From: Lepidodermella squamata
Lineage: Eukaryota; Animalia; Gastrotricha
DNA: 64,000 nucleotides
Direction of reading: 5' to 3'
NCBI GenBank assembly: GCA_047495785.1
Contig: JBLDXI010000021.1
Location: 62,001-126,000, forward strand
In this document: positions 1 to 61,535 of the stretch, piece by piece
Layout of the letters: the number at the start of each line of letters is the position of its first letter
How positions within the stretch are numbered: position 1 is the stretch's first letter
Notes under the pieces: model-generated
What the model saw: the letters and a program-made list of their open reading frames with translations, nothing else
What the model was told of the DNA's origin: nothing
The model's database searches: none
Program-made: the position numbers and the translations under genes

Positions 1-432
1 TTTCGCTCGAAGCCTGGTAGATAAATAAACACGGATAACAAAAAAATAACAAATCCCATCTTTCTACCTTAGGTAATATCATTTCGGCTAAAAATAAGTG
101 TAAAACGTCGGTTAAACATGAAAAATTTGAAGGATGAGTTCGAACATAGACTCGCCTTAATAAGCTAATTAGAACGAAGCGCTATTTTTACTGCATAACT
201 TGAACTAGCCACCTGATAGCAGCATAATTTAATAAAAAAAAATCGATTTGCGACACAGATATTCGGCGGAAAATATTTTCGCTAATTTCTAAAGGAATTT
301 AATGTCAAAGACAACGCCTACATTAAAACCATCCTAGATATTGCCAAATCATTTTTTTATTTTCAAAAATAATATTATTTTGGCAAGATTTGCTCGCGTC
401 AACTGTTTTTTAGTCTTTATTCCCTATAATTA

Positions 433-3271
433 TCAGATGATGACGTAGACAGTTCCAGATTTAGCGGCATCGTTCTCGTCGAACGAGCCGAGCCGCCGCG
501 GGAAATCGTCTTCATCACCAGCGAGATCGATAGGCACATTCGGATCTGTCTTCCTAAGATTACAGCTGTAAGACCGGAAAGCCGGACTTCTCAGCCCGAT
601 CGACGATTCCACTAATGATTCATCAGTTTTCGAGCCAGAATTCCTTATTTGACTCGTATTTGTTGCAGTCGTGGTTGTATTCACGTTAATTGAACTCGCA
701 ACAAGGCTTTCCTCCTCGATTTTAGCTTCGCTGCTTTTATTGACGATGACCTCCTTTTGAGGGCAATCGTGTTCGCCCTTGTCTAGGTAATAAAATTGCG
801 AACATTGCTCGCAAATTGCGACAATATCGCTGTGTCGCATTCGAAGGTGGCGATGAAATGCGTGCAGGCTAAGAAATAGGTCATCACAGCCGCGCACTGA
901 ACATCGATAGTCCGGTTTTAAATTCGCAACATTGCCAGCGAAAATTAGCGACTGCTCAAGCAATGAGACGGTCGCACTCGACGACGCGCGGAAAGAGACC
1001 GTAGTCGGCGCTAGGGATAGCGACTGCATGAGTGATCTCGGCGATGTCGGAGAATTGCTAGAAGCCGAGCAATTCCACATTGATCTAGAACTGTAGGTTT
1101 GTAGAACTTTGGACCGTAAGTACGATTTTTTTGCTGCTTTGAATGGCAACAGTTGATCACCCGCGGTAGGTGTTGTATTAGAAGTACTTGATTTTCTCTG
1201 CTTCTGTGATGCAGAGTGATAGTTGCTTCTTGAAGGCACGTAACTCAGATCAGCAAACCTCCTGTAAATCGGAAAGTGGATTAAAAAATTCATCAAAGCG
1301 AATTATAATCGAATCGATTTTTGGATTACATTTAAGTGTCTTTTGCCAAGTCCTTTTGATTAGAAATATTTTTTTAAATTTTCATGTTAAAATAAAAAAA
1401 AATTTAAAAATTAATGAAAATTCCTCAATTATGATAATTTTTTAATTTTTTTTATTTAAAAAGTAGAAAATAAAATTTTTAGATGATTTTAGAAAATTTT
1501 CTAAAGTTAATAAAATCAATTTAATAAAAACTAAAATCCAAAAAAATACTATTAAAAATAAAAAAAAATCCCCAACTCACTTTTGGCATGTAAGGATGGC
1601 GAGAACCTGAAGACGGACTCGGCGTAATCGTGTTGCATAAATGATAGGATTTATCAGCGGGCTCAGCATGAGAAGACTATTGAAAATTGTGTTAATTAAC
1701 AGGGCCTGATTTGAACTCGTCGCGAACGAATGCCGAGGTTCGCCTTTAAAAGTACTGCTGCTACGCGCCGATGTTCGAAGGTACATGTATAGCTCGAAGA
1801 TAATGAAAGGCATCTAAAATTTTGCAAACATTATTTAAATTTGTTTTATTTATTTTTCAAAATTTTTACCCAGCAAAACGAGAATGTGCCGATAAGGAGC
1901 ATTGTGGTTAGAACAAGGCGAAAAGTTTTCCGTTGCCTCGCCGTTTTCCGACGAGTTACCTTGACGAAAATTCGGCCATTTATGAATAACAGCAGCAAAA
2001 AACACGGGACAGTCAGCGCCATGACAAAAAATTCGACGCCAAATTTGTTCGACGCGTAATAAGTACACCAATCAGCCGTTCCCTTTTCCTAACAATAGGA
2101 AAACAGATAAAAAACTATTAGGATTTTTTATCGAACCAACCTCTTCAATTATTTCAAGGACGTCCTTGATCAAATCGCGCAAGTCTAGCGGCAGTTCCAT
2201 ATCAGACTCCAGATCATTTTTAGGGCCCTCAAAAAGGAATGCCGTGATATTGAAAGTGTCGCTGTAAAAGTACAAATTTGTCCAATAAAAACTGGTACAT
2301 ATCGATTTTTTTATATTATCAAATTACCGTCTCCCACGTATCAAAACGTTATCGATGATTGTGGCATAATGTTGGACTGAAGGCGTGACGATCGACGGCC
2401 ACGGTTGGGTGAAATGAAGAAATAGATTTGTGGGTGTTGATGTTTGGGACGTGGCCGATGTGCTGGGTGGGCTGTTCGAGTTGTAAGCCGCAAAAGCTGC
2501 GATTGTAACCGGTAATTCGATAAAGCCGAGTATTAAAGATAGAATCCAAAGACAAGCTATGGCACGAACAACTCGGCCTCCGCCCATGAGCTAAAAAAAA
2601 TATTGAAAAAATTGAATTAAATTAAAAAAAAAAATTAAAATTCATGAAATTTTTAAAAATGTATAAAAATTTAAAATAAAAATTTAAAAAGTAAGGAAGT
2701 AAAAATCAGTAAACAATTAAGAAAAGAAATTAATTTAAAAAATTATACATACCGAATTGTAGAGTAAGGGACGAAAGATGCCGAGGAAGTTGTCGGCAGT
2801 TAGACCGCCAATGCTAAGAAGGGACGCGAAATAGCCGACGAGGGTGAGTGAACGCAAGAAATTATTGCCGCAAGTTTCCATCAGCTGAAACTCGTATTTA
2901 CCAGCCAGCCTTTCGTGGCAGAACGTGACGACCGTGGTCGAAGCCATGAAAATATCGGCAGCGGCTAAACTGAGCAAAAACCGGCGATAACCAGCCAGGG
3001 CGAACCTAGCCCTAGTAACAGCGATTGCGATTAACACGTTGCTAACCAGGGCTAGGATGGATGAGACGATGTCGGCGTAGGCGAACGGCACCCGCCAGGT
3101 ATCGACGCCTGAAATGCCGTCCGAGGCCTGCATTTCGGCCGCCAGTTGCGAGTAGGGCGAAGGCGAGACATAGTCGTCCTCTGGGATCGGAATCTGGTCG
3201 CTATCGAAGTAAGGCGCCGGCGTCTCATCGGCCGCAGCGTTCAAAGAATGACTGTTTATGAACTCCACCAT
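433..3271 (-). CDS. Class A (rhodopsin-like) orphan GPCR with long ECL2 and a predicted zinc-finger-bearing C-terminal tail; exons 3271-2753, 2590-2328, 2261-2141, 2088-1870, 1813-1581, 1261-433
   Basis: TM1 'LVSNVLI', TM2 'LLSLAAADIF', TM3 'LTADNF' (DRY position), TM4 'CLWILS', TM6 'FSFCW|MPF', TM7 'NPIIYATRLRRVR'. All junctions are canonical GT-AG and in frame. The last exon encodes CSVRGC..H...H and CEQC...HDC. Confidence 0.88.
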
Positions 3272-5272
3272 AAAAAGCCAGTCTAAAAAAAAATGAGTTT
3301 AATTGACAACTGGATGCATCCCAGGGGGCTATTAAAAGACTTGCTTTTGATACCTATAAATATTACAAAAAAACGCGGCGCAATACTACTTGAGGATTTG
3401 AAGTGAACGAAACCATGCCAAAACCTACAGCTCAATTCAGTTCACTTGAAATGAGCTTTTTTTCTTATGAAAAGGAACCACAGATCTGCGGATTCCACTC
3501 GCTTTGATTGAATAATCAGGTATACGTGCTCAAACCAATGAGTAGCTACGCCACGACAAAAATCTAATCTAATTTTGTTTGGAAAAAAGACATAAAACTT
3601 TTGGACTTTGCATTGCACCTTTCTGCTCAAAGAAATTGCGTGACCTAAATTAAATTATCGCCACACATGGGGTTATGACCCCCGCCGTTGAAGAGCGAAT
3701 ATTGGTAAAAAATTGGAATAATATTTTTTATGGCCATTTTTCAGAGTTCGAAACTAGAGGCGGAAGTGGAGTCATTTACCGCGATATGAAGAAAAGAGCC
3801 ATAAAAAAGCTGTTGAAAAGCTATATTTATGCGTTAATCGATAACAGATGCTTACTTATTTCAGCCGATCGTGGTAGCCATGGCTTTGGCGAAAGCGAGT
3901 TTTTTCCTAGATTCGCCGGCTAAACTGGCGGAAGAACCAAGCCTGACGCAACTGCCGTTTTTTGGCCGCGCCTGACTATTACTCACGATTGAGTTACAAT
4001 GTTCGAATAAATCAGAATAAAATCACGCACGAGTGAATATTAAGAGCGGAAATATAGAGGAGTGTAGGTTTAAACACGCGCAAACTTGGTTACTCTTCAG
4101 GGTGTTTATTGATTGGTCATGCCTAAATGCTACTACGCCGTGTCAGAGACAGCATTTTGGCAATATAATGGTAATAAAAAAAATGAAATTGATATCGGAA
4201 ATTCATCACTGCGCATCTCCAAATTATGATCTAATTTCGAAGAATTCAATTCACCAAATTGTCCCCTGGCTCCAGCTAGGCAATTTCAGGTTAGCTATGT
4301 AGTATATCTCATTTCCCGAAGAAAAAAAAACGAATCTCATGCTTTATTAACCGCACAACATAGCCGCAGATATATTCCTAGCTATCAATAAAGATTATTT
4401 GAAACATTGCATTTTTTTTGGCATATCAGTATTTTTCACACCGTGTTGACGATTATAGCAACTTGAGTAGGGAGGAAGTGGCAATTTAATGGGCCGCGCT
4501 TGCAAATCAATTCCACGTATTAGCAGCTATGTCCTACTTCAGTGATTGATGATGACTTAAAAAACGGACGATATTATTATACGCATTATAATTCCCATAA
4601 GTTCGACCTAAATCTGGCGCAAAAATATTGCTAAAATGGCACTCAAAAGTTTTTAATACCGAGGCACGCGAATAAAAGAAAGATAATTATAATATTATAT
4701 CGGCGATAAAAAACAATAGAAAAATATTGAGACGTAGAAGAGGGGTAGTTGAAACAAAAAAAAATATTATGAAATCTGAAGCGAATGTAACATGAATTGA
4801 GGTCCACTGGGAGACACATTGGTCATATGTCATAATTATAGGAACTGTATAGGTGATAACAAGAATTTGATATATAGACATCATGTCCAGTCTTTTACAG
4901 CGGGGCGGAAAATGCTGATTAAAAAAACACGCTCAAAGATGTTGAGAACCCTCGGTTTTTCGCTTCGCATATGCATGCGATTTACTTTATACCTGGCTAT
5001 CTGAACTCACAAAAAGAATATTTTCTGTTTAATATATTGACCAGATCTTGCATTAGCTAAGCGGGTTCGCCGGTAAAAATAACAAAAATTAATTGCATTT
5101 AAACCACCGCACTAAATCTGCACAACTCAGTCCGGTATTGTTGAATGCTCAGTTTTTATTTATATCGCTGACAAAAGTATGGCAAAAGGACAAGGGATAA
5201 AATTTACGAAAAGGATTATTATTTTAAACCACGAGTGCAAAAAAAACTGAAAAAATTGGCAAAAAACTAGCG

Positions 5273-6025
5273 TTAAATTTCAATATGGTCGAAAGGCGCC
5301 GTTTCGAACGGCATTAGGCCGAAGGTTTCCGGCTTGAAATCAGCCAATGTCGGTAGAACTAGGACTTTTTCATCGATCGAAGCCAGTTGACTAGCTGATT
5401 GGTGCGAGTAAGTCGTCGGAATCGTCGGCACCCAGACGCAGTTCATGCCCGCTGCGAGCGCGCCCTGGACACCCATGACGGCGTCCTCAAATACCAAGCA
5501 ATTGCTGTAGCCACGAGGCGCGGTTTCAAATCGATCAGCAGCGGCGAGGTAAATATCAGGCGCTGGTTTGCCGTTAACAACGCTTGGATCGTTGCTCAAT
5601 ACCACGTGGCTGAAGAATTTGTCGAAAAAATCGCGGTGTCTTGTTATTTTACAGCTGTAAGATTGAGAATCCGAGCTCGTCGCGATTGCCATTGGTATTT
5701 TATTCCTATAAAAATGTTCGACCAGCTGCTCAGCTCCTGGCATAAAATCAGCTGTCGGGAGTAGTTGATTCAATTCCTGGCGAGTTTTCGAATTAATTTC
5801 GTCAACGCTGAGGGGTAGTTGGAATTTTTGCTGTAGCAGGGTCAGCGCCTTAATTCGGGGCCGTCCCATCATTTGTTCCTTGGTAGCGTTGTCGAAGTGT
5901 TTGCCGACGGTACTACGGCACAGATTATCGAATACATGAGTGTAGAATGGCTCGGTGTTCAGCAGAAGGCCGTCGAGGTCGAAAATAGCGTGGGTCACCA
6001 CCGATTTTTTATCACCGAGAGACAT
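5273..6025 (-). CDS. PUDP: HAD-superfamily hydrolase, pseudouridine-5'-phosphatase (HDHD1/PUDP/GS1-like), intronless
   Basis: Motif I 'THAIFDLDGLLLNTE', motif II 'AIATSS', 'GKPAPDIYL', 'CLVFEDAVMGV', C-terminal 'FKPETFGL'. Confidence 0.88.
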   Translation of the reverse strand: MSLGDKKSVVTHAIFDLDGLLLNTEPFYTHVFDNLCRSTVGKHFDNATKEQMMGRPRIKALTLLQQKFQLPLSVDEINSKTRQELNQLLPTADFMPGAEQLVEHFYRNKIPMAIATSSDSQSYSCKITRHRDFFDKFFSHVVLSNDPSVVNGKPAPDIYLAAADRFETAPRGYSNCLVFEDAVMGVQGALAAGMNCVWVPTIPTTYSHQSASQLASIDEKVLVLPTLADFKPETFGLMPFETAPFDHIEI

Positions 6026-6843: not shown

Positions 6844-7309
6844 TACCTAGACCAAGACACAACACTATTACGCATGCGCCTAAAGTAAATAGAGTCAAGA
6901 AAAAACTCACCCACACGACGAATGCGCAAAACATGTGTACCTTTGCGCAATTTTTTTACCTTCATTTTTTTCAAAACAGACACAGATAGATATGCGAAGT
7001 AAAGTGTTTGTTCGCACTGCGTTTCCTGTTAAATGCCGTTGTCTCAAGGATCGAGACGAATGTTTTACGCAGTAAAAGATGTTGTTATACCTGAGCGAAA
7101 AAACGTTCATTCATTATATCTACTCATCTGTGACGCACTTGTACGATGTCACATGATCAGAAACAGAGTAAAAAATGGCTGCAAACAGACCATCGTCAAT
7201 AACAGTCAATAACCATCGTCAAAACACAGTTACCTAATAGGGGTATATTGGCCTAGACTTTGCCAAAATACCTTCTTAGAACGCCTCAATTTCTCATTAA
7301 TTATTGAAA

Positions 7310-9864
7310 ATGGAAGTTCCTTACGCTGTGAAGCAAATTTGGGCGTATCGAGCTTTGCTAACCATTATTTTGACGCCAATCTTCCTGACGCCGTTGTTCA
7401 TGTACGAAGGTACAGAATTCGAAAAACCAGCCCGATGTACTTATGCCTTGATTATTCTCGTCGTTTATTGGACGACTGAATGCATACCGTTGGCCGTAAC
7501 AGCGCTGCTACCTATGGTCTTCTACCCTCTCATGGTAACTAGGCGAAATCATTGGAATAATCTTCGTTAATATTTTTCATTAATTTAGAAAATTTCCACA
7601 GCAATTGAGCTGGCTCCTAAATATATGACGGTAGAGGAGCGACCATAATTTTTCAATTATTTTTAATTTTTTTTTTTTAATTTTTAAGGAGGCTAATATG
7701 GTCTATTTGGGCAGTTATATTGTTATAATAGCCTTCGAAAATGCGAATCTACACAAACGATTCGCTCTTAGAATTCTGATGGTAGTCGGCCCTCAAGCTC
7801 GGTGGCTTTTATTCGGCATCATGATGTCCGCTTGCACTTTGTCGATGGTAAGAAAATTCAATCTTATCTCATATTTTCACGATTTTAATTCTAGTTTACG
7901 AATAATACTATCTGTTGCGCCTTGCATCTTCCTATTGTGAAAGGAATTATTGAAGAGCTGCGGGAGGCTGCGGCGAAGCCTAGAAAGCCGAGCAAGACGC
8001 CAAAAGCAACCGGTCTGAGCCATTTTAAGACCAAACTATCAGTTGCCTTCAAAAAGCGGCGATTGTCCTTTCCCCAACGGCGAGAAAGTCTGATCGACGA
8101 AAATTCGATTGATATAGGACTACCATATAAACACGACATTTCAATAGCTTCAATTGAAGAACATCCTGTGGAAGAAGATGACGATAATGGAAAAAATGAA
8201 GGCTTCACACTTGAGGTGATCGATGGAATCGAGAAAATGCTTCTCGTCGCAGCAGCTTACAGCTCGTCCATCGGTGGAATGTGCACGATGATCGGGACAC
8301 GGTCAAATCTTATTCTGAAAGAAAGAGCTGATGCAGTTTGGGAGCACTATAACTGCACCCAGCCGGTTAATTTCACGTCATGGATGGTAATAGGCGTACC
8401 TCTTGGCCATCTTTTCAATATCACCGCCTGGTTTTGGCTTCAAATTTACTTCATTGGCCCTCGGTAAATTTTGGAATTCTTCATTATTTTACGCAAAGAA
8501 TTTCGATTTGTTTAGGCAATTTGTGAACATTTGGTTCGTCCACCCGGTCGAGTTTTTCCTGCAAAAAATGAAGCATGGAACAGTTCCGCCCAAGCCAATT
8601 CAAGAGCAGCGAGTCACGGCAGTTATCCGAAATCTTTATTCACAGCTGGAACCGATGGGTTTCCAACAATACGCAGTTCTAGTTCACTGTTTTCTATTGA
8701 TTGGTCTCATGTTTACGCGACAAATTTCAACCGGTGAATCGGACGCTTTTCTCGGCTGGGGCATTATCGCGCCAAATCACGCGCGTGAATCAACCGCCGC
8801 GATTTTTGTCGCAACTCTACTATTCATTTTCCCGAGCCGGTTGCCAAGTTTTCGAAGGGGAACAGTCGTCGACCCGCCCGAGCCCCTGCTAAAATGGTCT
8901 GTTGTCGATAAAACGTTTCCATTCGGCGTTCTATTGGTGGTAGGTGGCGGTATAGCTGCGGCTGATGGCGCGCAGGCATCAGGGCTCATCGAAATAATTG
9001 TGCCGTTTTTCCGAAATATGATCTCACAAATTCCGCTACAAGCTGCTATACTCATCATTTGTATCATTGTCAGTATTTTGACGGAATTCACATCCAATGT
9101 TGCATGTGTAGCGCTGCTCTCGCCATTAATGGAGAAACTGGTGAGCAGATTTTCAAAAATTACGAATTATCGATTATTTTTTGATAAAATGTTAACAGAA
9201 GAAACTGAATGCACACAATCGAAGAAAGTAACAGGGAAAAGGGATCAGGAAGTTAAAATCCGAGAATGATCTTCTGGTCCGGGGGTATTTTTTTATGGGG
9301 AAATGGGAACATGTCATAAAGATTGGAAAATTCCGAAGAAATCCAGTTAGAGCAGGTAAAATACCGAAAATTACTGAACGATTCCCTTCGGATTTTCCCT
9401 TCATTTCTTAGGGAAATAGTAGGGAATCCTCTAATCTTACCAAAAAGGACCAACATTGTCTTCAAAAATTTCAAAAATTAATAAGTCGGTTAATTAATGA
9501 CAAACCCTGCATTAAGGAGGATTTTGTAATCCAATCATTGATATTCTCCGTTTTTTCAAGGCTTCGGATATGAATGTGAACCCACTCTTGTTCCTATTTC
9601 CGACCACCCTATCAGCCGCTCTTGCTTTCATGCTGCCGGTCGCAACTCCGCCGAACGCGCTGGTTTTTGCCACGAACAAACTTAAAGTCATAGATATGGT
9701 AAATAGCTCATTTATAATTCATGAAATATTTTATTTCTTGCAATGCTTTCCAGGTGATTTGCGGATCTGTTATGAAGGTGATAGGAATTCTATTCGTGCT
9801 GCTCGCGGTGACAACCTGGGGCAACGCTTTCTTTCATCTGATGAGCCCTCCTTGCACTCATTGA
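7310..9864 (+). CDS. SLC13/DASS family Na+-dicarboxylate/citrate/sulfate cotransporter (INDY-like), ~7 exons including a ~40 bp mini-exon near 7590-7630
   Basis: 'YWTTECIPLAVTALLP', 'NLHKRFAL', 'AYSSSIGGMCTMIGT', 'NFTSW', 'LTEFTSNVA', 'AFMLPVATPPNALVF'; spliced end VICGSVMK...PPCTH* at 9864. Confidence 0.93.
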
Positions 9865-10252
9865 ATGTTACGATAATAAAAGCTAATAAATTATTGTTGG
9901 AAAATCAATTGTTTTTTATTTCGAAAAAAATTACAAGACAAAAACAAAAATTCCTAATAATATAAAGTCTCACAAGTATAACTTTTTTCGTAAAGAAATC
10001 GAAATTTTCATACACAGATATAATAATATTATTATAGTTGTTACATTTTATTCAGGCGATTGATCCAATTTTTTATTCTATAGTTTGGTGTACATAAATT
10101 GATATAATAATAATATTAGTAATATTCAGATTTTATAATAATAATAATAATATTAATAATTTTACTGCAGTTTAAATAATATTTGAAGAGATTAATATTA
10201 TCATCATAATAATATTAGGAATTTTAGGGTAGGAAGCTGCTTTCTGGTTCTC

Positions 10253-18354: not shown

Positions 18355-20491
18355 TCAACTTGAGCAGGAAAGGGACGGTTTTTTCGTTCGTTTAGTTTTA
18401 GCTACATTCACCCGAAGTTCTTTCAACGGGACATCATCATCGTCATCACTTTCGAAATGATGTTTCGATTCGACATGGCAAGTCAACGACCGTTCAAACC
18501 AGAAACTTTTACCGCAAAACGAGCATGCATAAGATTTCGTGTCGTGCTTTACAGATAAATGAAGCTCAAGATCTTCGTAATTTTCAAAAATATTCGAGCA
18601 AGTTTTACACGCGTAAGTCATTTGATCAGGTGAAAGACCGTGGATGAGAGTTTTGTGGAGAGTCAAAGCAGCAAACGTTTTGAATTTTCCACCACAGTTT
18701 GAGCAGTCTATCGTAGATTTCCGACAAGTTTTAAAATTGACCAATCCTCCTTCAATAACAATTTCACATTCCGCCAGTTGGCACAGTTTCCCAGTGATAT
18801 CACACTTAGCTATATGACCGTCATATTCTTCAAGGCTCAAAGACATGTCAAAACATTTCGAGCAGACAAAAGCCGAGTTGTTGTGATAGGAGGCAACGTG
18901 ATTTTTCAAATGTGAGCCAGATCTCAAAATAGCACTACAACCTTTGAATAAACACTGTTTCTCGCATTTTCGACGATTTTCAACGTCATGAGCGTCAGAT
19001 AAGTGTTCATTTAAGGCGGTTGGGGTTAGAAAACAGGCATCATTCGGGCACAAATTGCAATGATAAGTCGAATAGACATGGCCAGTTTTGTTACGATGGC
19101 CATCTAACAGTTCAATTTTGTCAAATTTAACCCAACAGATTTGGCAAGTGAGCAAATCAAACGCAGAATTATCGCACGTTTTTCCATCAAGATGCGCCTT
19201 AAGATCGAAGATATTTGCAAACATGGCGGCGCAAAATGAACAGATAAACGCGTCTTTCCCATGCCAATGATCGACGTGACTTCGAAATGCAGCTTTACCG
19301 CGATAGACAGCTCGACATCCATCGACAATACACTCGAAAACTGACCCTTTTGAGCCGGATTTACCCGACATTTTAGGATGGACTTTTTCAATGTGGGAGT
19401 TCAGATTATTTCGGCTCAACGAAATGACGCCGCAATGATGGCAAACGAAGCTAGCATACACATGTTTCTCCTGTAGCTGATGGCTGTGAAGGTCAGCGAA
19501 AGTTTTGAACGTTTTCAAGCAAATTTTACACGTCAAAAAATCGCAGTTGGGAGATTCTGGCCGTTTTTCAACGAGACATTTCTCGCCGTGTTTTGATAAA
19601 TCCGAATACAACTGAAATTGGCAGAAACACTTTCGGCAGATGAAAATTGAGTTCTGATGCCACTCATAGACGTGGCGGACCAATTTTGGCCCTGCCTGGA
19701 AAATCGAATCACAACCCTTCGCCAAACAAATCAATTTAGGGTCATCCGTAATTGCGGCAATTCGATGATCCTTAGCTACATGGCGACTAAGATCTTCATC
19801 TTTCAACGCGAAATATAGGCATTTATCAACTGGGCAGTGGAGCGACGAATAGATATGGCCTTTATCAACACGATGGGCCTGAAAATTCTCGAAATTCTCG
19901 AATCTCTTAATGTACTTATTTGGGAACTTATTGCAGATTCGGCAATAAATGACGGCATTTGTTGAAACACTAGGGGGAGCACTGGAAACCTGACGATGAG
20001 CGATATTTATATGCCTCAAATAGATTTCCTGGCTCGGAAATTCGACTGGAAAGGGACAAGAAGAGCAGGTGAATCGCTGCTCTGTTCTTGTTACTTGCGG
20101 CTCGTCAAAAACCTCAGGGAGTGGCGTTTCACAATCGCAACTGCACTCCTCCTTGATATAGAAATCGACGGATGAGCGGCATCTCAATTCAGTGGAATAA
20201 TCGACAGGTTCAGCTTTTACAAAATTGCAACTGAAAATTCGAAAAGCTTAATTTGTGGGTGAACTTTTAGCGCTAAAACTAACCTGGAATTCGAAAGACT
20301 GCTAGAACTTCGGTCATTCAGGCTCGAAGCTGGGCGACCACCAACGGGGACGAAAACTATCTTTCCTGGTTTAGCTACGTTTGGCTGGTCTCTAAATATG
20401 AATTGTAAAATGATGAATAAATTCAAATAATTCAAATTGTATACCTGACAAGACGAAATTTGTTGGATACACTCAGCACGTTTCGAGCCAT
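18355..20491 (-). CDS. ZF3: family zinc-finger protein with three four-finger blocks
   Basis: ATG 20491; micro-exon 'GKIVFVPVGGRP' then 'VKAEPVD...IKEECSC'; signature FTCSSCPFPVEFPSQEIYLRHINIAH; ORF 18355-20187. Confidence 0.88.
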
Positions 20492-60499: not shown

Positions 60500-61535
60500 T
60501 CAATCAAGCTGTTCTTTTTTCATCACCTTCGATGGAACAGGGGATTCCGACGAAATTTCATCTGACAATCGCTTAGCTGAGGGCTTCTTTATCAGCCAAG
60601 TGTCCATAAAACCCTTCGGTTTCTTCTCATCCTTATCGTTGTAAGGCTTGCAAACCGCGACGCTGTGATCTCGATTAACAACACTGCTAACGGCTTTGCT
60701 GACGCGATGGAAAGTTAGATCTGCACACGGACGTAAAAGTTGAGCAGCGATGTCAACGGGTGTAGACGGATCAAGCCATTTCAGAGCGTCCTCGGCATTT
60801 AGAAACACTGCCGGCATTCTTTCGTGGATGGTACCTGCGGGCGTGGAGGTCGAATCAACTGTGACGATGGCAACGCTGGCAAATGGATTCGGACGAGTAA
60901 CGTTATCGTTTATATCAAATACGCCAGCCATAAACAATGGATTATGCTCTTCTTCGACCTGATTTTCGTTGTCCCACCAGTTAAATTTCTGGGGGCGGTA
61001 AATGTAGAAGGGCGCTTTACCTCCTGATGATTGCGCTTGCCATTCATAATAGCCGTCACACACAACAATGCAACGATATCCTTTACGAAGAGGATTCAAA
61101 AACATTGGTTTTTCTAGAATGGACTCGGCTCGGCAGTTGTTAGTTGTAAGCTTGAAATTCTTAAGATCATCATGAAAATAGCGGGGAACCAGTGACCAAT
61201 ACATTGGGACAGCAACCAAATTTAAACTCGAGCATTCGCGCTTCTCCATGGCTTCCGATTCTATTTGAATGCCAGCTTTGCGAAGCAACTGAACATCGCA
61301 GATAACAGGCAAATGACTTGTTGGCGTCATGTTACAATTAGGGTAAGAAGAATCGCTACCACGAACACCTTTATTAATGACTGCCCAGCCAGCAGGGTTA
61401 ATTAAACCCCCGGTTGCTCGCGGCGTGGAACGGCAACAGAGCGTTTTGGGATCAAGAGCGCTGGAATAACAAAATTCGAATTAAGAAATGCTTTCAATAC
61501 AGCTTTTCGACGAACCATGCTACTCTACCACACAT
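60500..61535 (-). CDS. HMCES: Abasic-site processing protein HMCES (SRAP domain), 2 exons
   Basis: N-terminal MCGRVA|C (catalytic Cys2), 'NCRAES', 'RCIVVCDGYYEW', 'IHERMPAV', C-terminal PIP-like 'MDTWL'. Confidence 0.93.

Follow-up and report, generated by a model that had tools for sequence, protein, structure and literature searches.

A Class A Receptor Gene of the Gastrotrich Lepidodermella squamata with a Putative Zinc-Finger Pair in Its Tail

The subject of this analysis is a receptor gene near one end of a 64,000-nucleotide stretch of the genome of the gastrotrich Lepidodermella squamata (GenBank assembly GCA_047495785.1, contig JBLDXI010000021.1, positions 62,001 to 126,000 of the forward strand), hereafter called the window. 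On its minus strand, from 3271 to 433, the reading frames of a class A GPCR (G protein-coupled receptor) are followed by a frame containing a pair of putative zinc fingers, and comparison with a distant ortholog makes it most likely that receptor and zinc-finger tail are joined as one gene. The explanation that best accommodates the whole of the results, and that we regard as probable, is that of a single gene encoding an orphan rhodopsin-class receptor of 727 residues with a zinc-stabilized tail module. The novelty would then probably lie in a class A GPCR whose tail bears an unusual folded domain, encountered so far in two lineages.

Structure of the Receptor Gene

The gene model comprises six exons (2184 nucleotides [nt]), the coordinates of which are listed in table 1; all its introns have GT..AG borders, and the GC content of its exons (0.44-0.55) contrasts with that of its introns (0.10-0.27). 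A previous sequence-only reading of the window had noted a GTGAGT donor at 1580 that overlaps a TGA codon and could be spliced in frame, in phase 2, to an acceptor TTTACAG/G at 1261, thereby adding to the receptor a tail of about 275 residues bearing a finger pair. Inspection of the minus strand confirms each of these points, namely the overlap of donor and stop (TGA at 1579-1577), the coordinates, phase and frame of the splice, and the presence of the finger pair in the added tail. The 3' end of exon 5 reads ACA TGC CAA AA at 1581, and the unspliced reading closes as ILTCQK followed by the stop codon. Splicing to the acceptor TCCGATTTACAG/G (TTTACAG/G), with exon 6 starting at 1261, joins AA to G in a Lys codon, after which the frame continues with RFADLSY and so on to the TGA at 435-433. 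Intron 5 is the longest of the gene (319 nt), and the GC content of its core (0.10-0.12) resembles that of introns 1 and 4, unlike that of the flanks (0.30-0.40).

A Distant Ortholog with the Same Layout

HMMER searches with the tail against 1.8 billion representative proteins returned a single real homolog, P0001 (E value 1.5e-16), the other matches being generic finger proteins of the Cx4C type. P0001 is an open reading frame (ORF) on a metagenome scaffold of 13.9 kb, L001; there, ORFs carrying 7tm_1 immediately precede it in the same orientation. The L001 receptor shares with that of the window 56% identity over exon 1 (ORF P0008) and 35% in the tail, and the two proteins start alike, with MVEFISSHS in L001 and MVEFINSHS in the window. 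Modeled with exons at 552-1028, 1334-1951, 2016-2236 and 2290-3019, the L001 gene encodes a protein of 681 residues that aligns end to end with the window model (300 identities in 659 aligned columns). Three introns are common to both genes. Two of them are of phase 0, one following transmembrane helix 3 (TM3) and the other the CW of TM6; the third, of phase 2, follows helix 8. The position of the last is offset by one codon, the codon that it splits being that of Lys after CQ in the window and, closer to NPIIY by one residue, that of Arg after CC in L001.

The helix-8 intron of L001 measures 53 nt; a branch site resembling TACTAA is situated about 25 nt from its TTATAG acceptor. Left unspliced, the L001 receptor would continue through ten codons that are not conserved until a TAG is reached, and 12 nt past this stop lies the first in-frame ATG of the tail ORF. 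These distances are too short to accommodate a promoter, a poly(A) signal or a separate acceptor for trans-splicing. An AATAAA is found about 80 nt past the tail stop codon of L001. Two scaffolds from other samples, L002 and L003, are near-identical to L001 and do not represent independent lineages. Between L001 and L002, divergence amounts to two substitutions and one 1-nt indel in the 53-nt segment and to 0.9-1.2% in the tail; in the true flanks it is 17-27%, and large gaps occur. Judging from this pattern of divergence among near-identical copies, the 53-nt segment behaves like an intron, and like neither intergenic spacer nor coding sequence. Beyond the L001 lineage, no ortholog emerged from word-indexed searches with the tail and with exon 1, from a profile of the tail or from scans of metagenome contigs, and the ESM Atlas yielded solely generic zinc-finger and generic class A neighbors.

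The Zinc-Finger Module of the Tail

Sequence conservation in the tail is concentrated in a block of 60 residues that holds both fingers (table 1), in which 31 positions (52%) are identical between window and L001, as compared with about 15% in the rest of the tail. Finger 1 follows the pattern Y-x-C-x4-C-x3-F-x5-F-x2-H-x4-H, which is identical in L001 and agrees with the arrangement of classical C2H2 fingers (C-x2-5-C-x12-H-x3-5-H, with an aromatic residue and a Leu in the core), and it is separated from finger 2 by six residues. The eight putative ligands of the two fingers (C7, C12, H25, H30, C37, C40, H51 and C53) are kept in L001 and are invariant in alignment A4, which includes units of the zinc-finger (ZF) gene family of the window that is considered below. 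The eight-ligand module thus conserved seems to be selectively maintained. The segment between helix 8 and this block probably constitutes a disordered linker and phosphorylation region.

Structural predictions give a mixed picture of the fold. With the orthologs as the only aligned sequences, AlphaFold2 (AF2) produced a model with a predicted local distance difference test (pLDDT) of 50 and E-E-H (beta-beta-alpha) elements; with ZF-family units of the window added to the alignment, pLDDT rose to 85 and the model showed a beta-beta-alpha unit plus a hairpin-helix. In Foldseek searches of the PDB, the best 50 matches listed are all C2H2 arrays, among them WT1, ZNF410, Zif268, KLF4 and CTCF, with weak E values, of at least 0.096, and TM-scores of about 0.46. 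Because the model with the higher pLDDT is biased by its alignment, a zinc-finger fold of the tail module is considered no more than likely. Pfam gave no hits with the whole tail, and the weak matches obtained within it were to fingers, with no catalytic domain among them.

Other elements of the tail are less constant. The alignment of window and L001 tails contains no conserved basic cluster resembling an NLS (nuclear localization signal) and no conserved cleavage motif. The sequence VPIDLAGDEDD, previously likened to a SUMO-interacting motif (SIM) or a CtBP-binding motif, is indeed present at 505-537; the ortholog has a gap at that place, and the functional reading of the motif, which this leaves unsupported, was dropped. 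Both tails have hydrophobic C-termini, YVII in the window (433-444) and EEQV in L001 (3005-3019), which could be ligands of PDZ type, their class not being conserved.

Table 1. Features of the receptor gene and its tail in the window
Feature	Positions	Strand	Remarks
Exon 1	2753-3271	minus	N-terminus, TM1-TM3, DNF replacing DRY; Pfam 7tm_1 E value 1.2e-5 (fragment)
Exon 2	2328-2590	minus	TM4 and start of long second extracellular loop; GT..AG borders; collinear with L001 exon 2
Exon 3	2141-2261	minus	Middle of second extracellular loop; both flanking introns absent in L001
Exon 4	1870-2088	minus	Loop cysteine, TM5, short third intracellular loop, TM6 to FCW
Exon 5	1581-1813	minus	Remainder of TM6, TM7 (NPIIY), helix 8; ends LAILTCQ plus AA
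Donor GTGAGT	1575-1580	minus	Contains the TGA (1577-1579) at which the unspliced reading stops
Intron 5	1262-1580	minus	Phase 2, 319 nt; L001 counterpart 53 nt
In-frame ATG	1291-1293	minus	32 nt upstream of acceptor; possible stand-alone start if the tail ORF were a separate gene
Exon 6 (tail exon)	433-1261	minus	829 nt, frame of 275 codons, TGA at 433-435; homolog P0001
Proximal tail	943-1260	minus	About 106 residues, Ser/Thr/Lys-rich, poorly conserved
Conserved block	763-942	minus	FAG...KPDYRC...HDC, 60 residues, holds both fingers
Finger 1	832-909	minus	YRCSVRGCDDLFLSLHAFHRHLRMRH; putative C2H2 finger, Cx4C-x12-H-x4-H, F and L core positions
Finger 2	763-813	minus	CEQCSQFYYLDKGEHDC; putative short C2HC knuckle, Cx2C-x10-H-x-C (L001: Cx2C-x9-H-x-C)
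Acidic motif VPIDLAGDEDD	505-537	minus	Gap in ortholog at that place
AATAAA	416-421	minus	12 nt past tail stop codon; likely poly(A) signal

One Gene or Two

Evidence at the RNA level is indirect and comes from an RNA-labelled run, X1. Of the 31-mers sampled from 433-1600, a share of 0.67 is present in X1, where one would expect 0.70 with the whole tail exon in and the intron out, about 0.55 with transcripts starting close to the internal Met, and about 1.0 with DNA or unspliced RNA. The same run contains 0.50 of the words of 400-3400, so that part of the receptor exons is present too. These shares indicate expression of both the receptor and the tail parts and fit the removal of the intron.

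Several observations weigh against a single gene for a receptor with a finger-bearing tail. The word shares of X1 do not establish the connectivity of receptor and tail, and the codon-usage log-odds of 1260-1081 are uninformative (+2.1 bits), having been obtained with a model trained on ZF exons under which even true TM exons scored near zero. Across all the libraries searched the gene is found in only two lineages, and in both of them an in-frame ATG lies just upstream of the acceptor (at 1293 in the window and at 2279, 11 nt upstream, in L001). A transcript starting inside the last intron could encode a soluble finger protein, and the two ATGs may be either a coincidence or the mark of such an alternative product. 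As to the module itself, the Pfam finger calls stay under threshold (zf-C2H2_4 at 13.0 bits, for a cut-off of 27), and the AF2 model with a pLDDT of 85 leans on an alignment composed mostly of ZF-family units. Sub-threshold Pfam scores are usual for a lone divergent finger.

The main alternative is that of two genes, in which the GPCR would end at CQK and the ORF of 433-1296 would be an independent small zinc-finger protein, starting at the ATG at 1293 or at the Met of MWNCS (1080). Its expression would depend either on a promoter of its own within the 300-nt spacer or on an operon, resolved by trans-splicing at the 1261 acceptor, of which it would be the downstream cistron. The overlap of stop and donor, the in-frame ATGs just mentioned and an AATAAA-like sequence in the spacer would suit this arrangement, even if the last is expected by chance in DNA with 10% GC, and the composition of the spacer is intron-like, not intergenic-like. 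The first ATG past the acceptor lies in frame in the window, another point in favor of two genes, whereas in L001 it is out of frame and opens an upstream ORF of four codons; the alignment of the two tails contains no conserved internal start Met. The 12 nt between readthrough stop and ATG in L001 include neither a poly(A) signal nor any AG apart from that of the stop codon itself. The peptide produced by readthrough is not even the same in L001 and L002, and the donor is conserved in phase and, within one codon, in position. The peptides that the ATGs upstream of the two acceptors would open are similar (IYRR in the window, MLYRK in L001), a likeness that needs no selection at the protein level because a YAG acceptor reads so in that phase. 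Taken together, these data render the presence of two genes unlikely.

A second possibility retains a single gene and makes the fused mRNA its minor product: the usual protein would be the short receptor ending in CQK, produced by retention of intron 5, and the form with the tail would be a regulated isoform. Such a short isoform had been suggested from the position of the stop exactly on the donor, and intron 5 is the longest of the gene; the coincidence of stop and donor is peculiar to the genome of the window, given that readthrough extends over ten codons in L001 and eight in L002, and the suggestion thus finds no support. Since, moreover, the word share of X1 fits the absence of the intron from RNA contigs and a conserved module implies a translated tail, we regard this possibility as highly improbable.

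Relationship with the Neighboring Zinc-Finger Family

The window contains about twenty ZF genes on its minus strand, between 10250 and 57500. Nine of these (18358-41387) are single exons of 1.8-2.5 kb encoding 11-19 fingers in a repeated block of four, in which a characteristic pair recurs: a C2H2 finger of the Cx4C type, a linker of six residues and a Cx2C-x12-H-x3/4-C finger. The tail module shares with this family the order of the eight ligands and the H-x6-C linker, together with, in some units, a GC dipeptide before the second Cys, a D after it and FLSL. It differs in comprising one pair attached to a membrane receptor, as against 11-19 fingers, and in its second finger, which is shortened by 2-3 residues at each of two places (x9-10 and x1, as against x12 and x3-4 in the family). 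In tblastn searches with the tail within the window, the best unit of the ZF family has an E value of 5e-5. A profile built from 15 ZF-family pairs scores the window tail at 29.5 bits and the L001 tail at 35.8 bits, compared with at most 25 bits for every unit in three unrelated proteins of the Cx4C type (those that, orthologs aside, matched the tail best in the global search) and 42-73 bits for true family units in leave-one-out tests. The tail module thus appears closer to the family pair type than to generic fingers and yet well outside the family, its resemblance to the family pair being above chance but weak. The earlier identification of the tail pair with fingers 3-4 of the family repeat holds for the type of pair, the eight ligands and the linker; it does not extend to the profile scores, which lie below those of every family unit.

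A proposal starting from this resemblance is that exon shuffling, recent and via phase-2 introns, brought the finger pair from the adjacent ZF cluster into a receptor that would release a nuclear fragment. The type of pair, the alignment of the eight ligands and the scores above those of unrelated Cx4C proteins speak for this proposal, as does a crude scan in which the candidate acceptors preceding large ZF exons are nearly all of phase 2. Against it stands the presence of the module in a species only 35-56% identical, as a consequence of which any capture must have been ancient, in addition to the scores under those of every leave-one-out family unit and the shortened second finger. Moreover, no intron bounds the unit to be transferred, the tail module lying in the middle of an exon of 829 nt and the family fingers inside huge exons. 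Between the receptor and the nearest ZF gene of the cluster there are 7 kb and two unrelated genes, for a hydrolase of HAD type and a transporter of SLC13 type, and the ZF genes adjoining the L001 receptor have plain Cx2C fingers only, without the Cx4C type. The lack of a conserved NLS-like cluster or cleavage motif further counts against release of a nuclear fragment. A recent local capture is therefore not supported, and the proposal in its entirety seems very unlikely. It is possible that an ancient fusion of the receptor to a large exon of ZF type was followed by decay to one pair, though no result of this analysis requires such a history; the data argue weakly for an origin from the ZF family, which, if true, would be ancient. 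A match of 14 residues links AFRSYSCNLRKTDP in the distal tail (559-600) to AFRIFSCNFVKAEP, with which a large ZF exon opens (20206-20247, minus strand). It has 8 identities and an E value of 0.58; we judged it to be probably due to chance, because its order relative to the fingers is wrong and it is not conserved in L001.

Features of the Receptor Part

The receptor of the window presents the landmarks of class A GPCRs, including N in TM1, LAAAD, W in TM4, P in TM5, FCWMPF and NPIIY, of which LAAAD, FCWMPF and NPIIY (the D2.50, CWxP and NPxxY microswitches) are also kept in L001. Exon 1 alone matches Pfam 7tm_1 with 25.3 bits (E value 1.2e-5), a value that pertains to a fragment and falls under the whole-protein cut-off of 30.5; the ORFs of the L001 ortholog are flagged PF00001. 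Directly downstream of the latter, L001 carries an intronless tandem paralog of the receptor (3180-4502), with a tail of about 29 residues and no fingers; its counterpart in the window would fall beyond coordinate 1. The L001 paralog scores 73.6 bits over positions 2-260 of the 7tm_1 profile and matches MC4R in the PDB with an E value of 5e-9. Melanocortin and aminergic receptors are the nearest solved relatives.

Arg3.50 of the E/DRY motif is not present in any of these proteins, the corresponding residues being ADNF in the window (2771-2779, minus strand), ADNY in the L001 ortholog (983-991) and IDNF in the L001 paralog (3243-4502). The whole small receptor family thus is without Arg3.50 while retaining CWxP and NPxxY. 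Arg3.50 is common in class A, yet it is no obligatory criterion for membership. With orphan receptors of this class the window protein shares the seven helices, N1.50, D2.50, W4.50, P5.50, CWxP and NPxxY, a cysteine in helix 8 and a Ser/Thr-rich tail; it is unlike them in having DNF (DNY in L001), a second extracellular loop of about 125 residues and a tail of 276 residues with a finger pair. The loop (2088-2500, minus strand) is spread over three exons and includes L-x-[DE]-L-I-x-D-V-L, an amphipathic stretch that is conserved, and the sequence DWCT[YF]YASNKFG directly before TM5. Introns 2 and 3 of the window gene, which lie in this loop, are absent in L001 and must therefore have been gained or lost.

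Comparison with Known Systems and Possible Function

The tails of rhodopsin-class receptors are almost always unstructured and act via phosphorylation and short motifs. To our knowledge, no characterized class A receptor has a zinc finger in its tail, and literature searches found no described receptor combining 7tm_1 with C2H2. The closest parallels are partial. GPCR-bigrams of oomycetes and other protists combine an N-terminal 7TM receptor with an accessory domain that is catalytic and lies C-terminally, such as a PIPK, cyclase, phosphodiesterase or kinase, in one polypeptide (PMC6033456, PMC5784254); the window tail would share this fusion of accessory domain and receptor but its candidate domain, a finger pair, is not catalytic, and the organism that carries it is an animal (an integrin alpha is encoded on L001). 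The nuclear import of Frizzled offers a precedent, in the cleaved C-terminal fragment of Drosophila Fz2, for a 7TM tail that carries information to the nucleus (PMC7944400); that fragment carries no finger, whereas the window tail is without a conserved cleavage site or nuclear signal. A direct link between a receptor and a zinc-finger protein is known from PLZF, which binds the tail of the AT2 receptor (PMC3466278), the finger protein being encoded in that case by a separate gene, whereas here the finger pair would be inside the receptor tail. Finally, the finger of FOXP proteins (FOXP-CC) is likewise a single C2H2 finger of the Cx4C type beside an interaction region; the tail scores far below the cut-off of that domain (15.2 bits, for a cut-off of 28.9) and has neither leucine zipper nor forkhead domain.

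In the mechanism that we propose, the seven helices would place the C-terminus, and hence the tail, in the cytosol, where a fast-evolving linker rich in Ser, Thr and Lys would lead to the 60-residue finger block and then to an acidic, poorly conserved end. Each finger would bind one zinc ion (two in total), forming a small folded domain tethered about 115 residues from helix 8 by the disordered and phosphorylatable linker. This domain may provide a docking surface that brings a partner, protein or RNA, to the receptor once it is activated or internalized. A lone canonical C2H2 finger does not normally suffice to bind DNA in a sequence-specific manner, and for this reason we favor an interaction role over that of a transcription factor. 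Arg3.50 is the residue most tied to G-protein activation, and its replacement by Asn makes tail-based signaling, rather than classical G-protein coupling, a reasonable guess. Bolder versions, in which the receptor would be a switch from membrane to genome or RNA, its tail being cut in the Ser/Thr-rich linker once ligand has bound and the receptor has been internalized, and the finger pair moving to the nucleus, or else a membrane anchor that would hold ZF proteins of the expanded Cx4C/C2HC family by contacts between fingers, in either case bypassing G proteins, appear to us distinctly improbable. Cleavage and nuclear release of the tail are pure speculation, an idea further weakened because no basic cluster is conserved in the tail.

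If true, the conservation of a folded tail with a finger pair in two distant lineages would represent a new wiring of a 7TM receptor to intracellular partners, and a compact, testable case of domain accretion onto an animal GPCR, in spirit like the GPCR-bigrams of protists. The locus also holds a warning for annotation, given that gene callers break it into separate ORFs in every assembly seen in this analysis.

Other Genes of the Window

Besides the receptor and the ZF cluster, the window contains a single-exon gene for a hydrolase of the HAD family (5276-6025, minus strand), a multi-exon gene for a transporter of the SLC13/Na-sulfate-symporter type (7304-9965, plus strand) and a gene for a protein with SRAP domain (60506-61480, minus strand).

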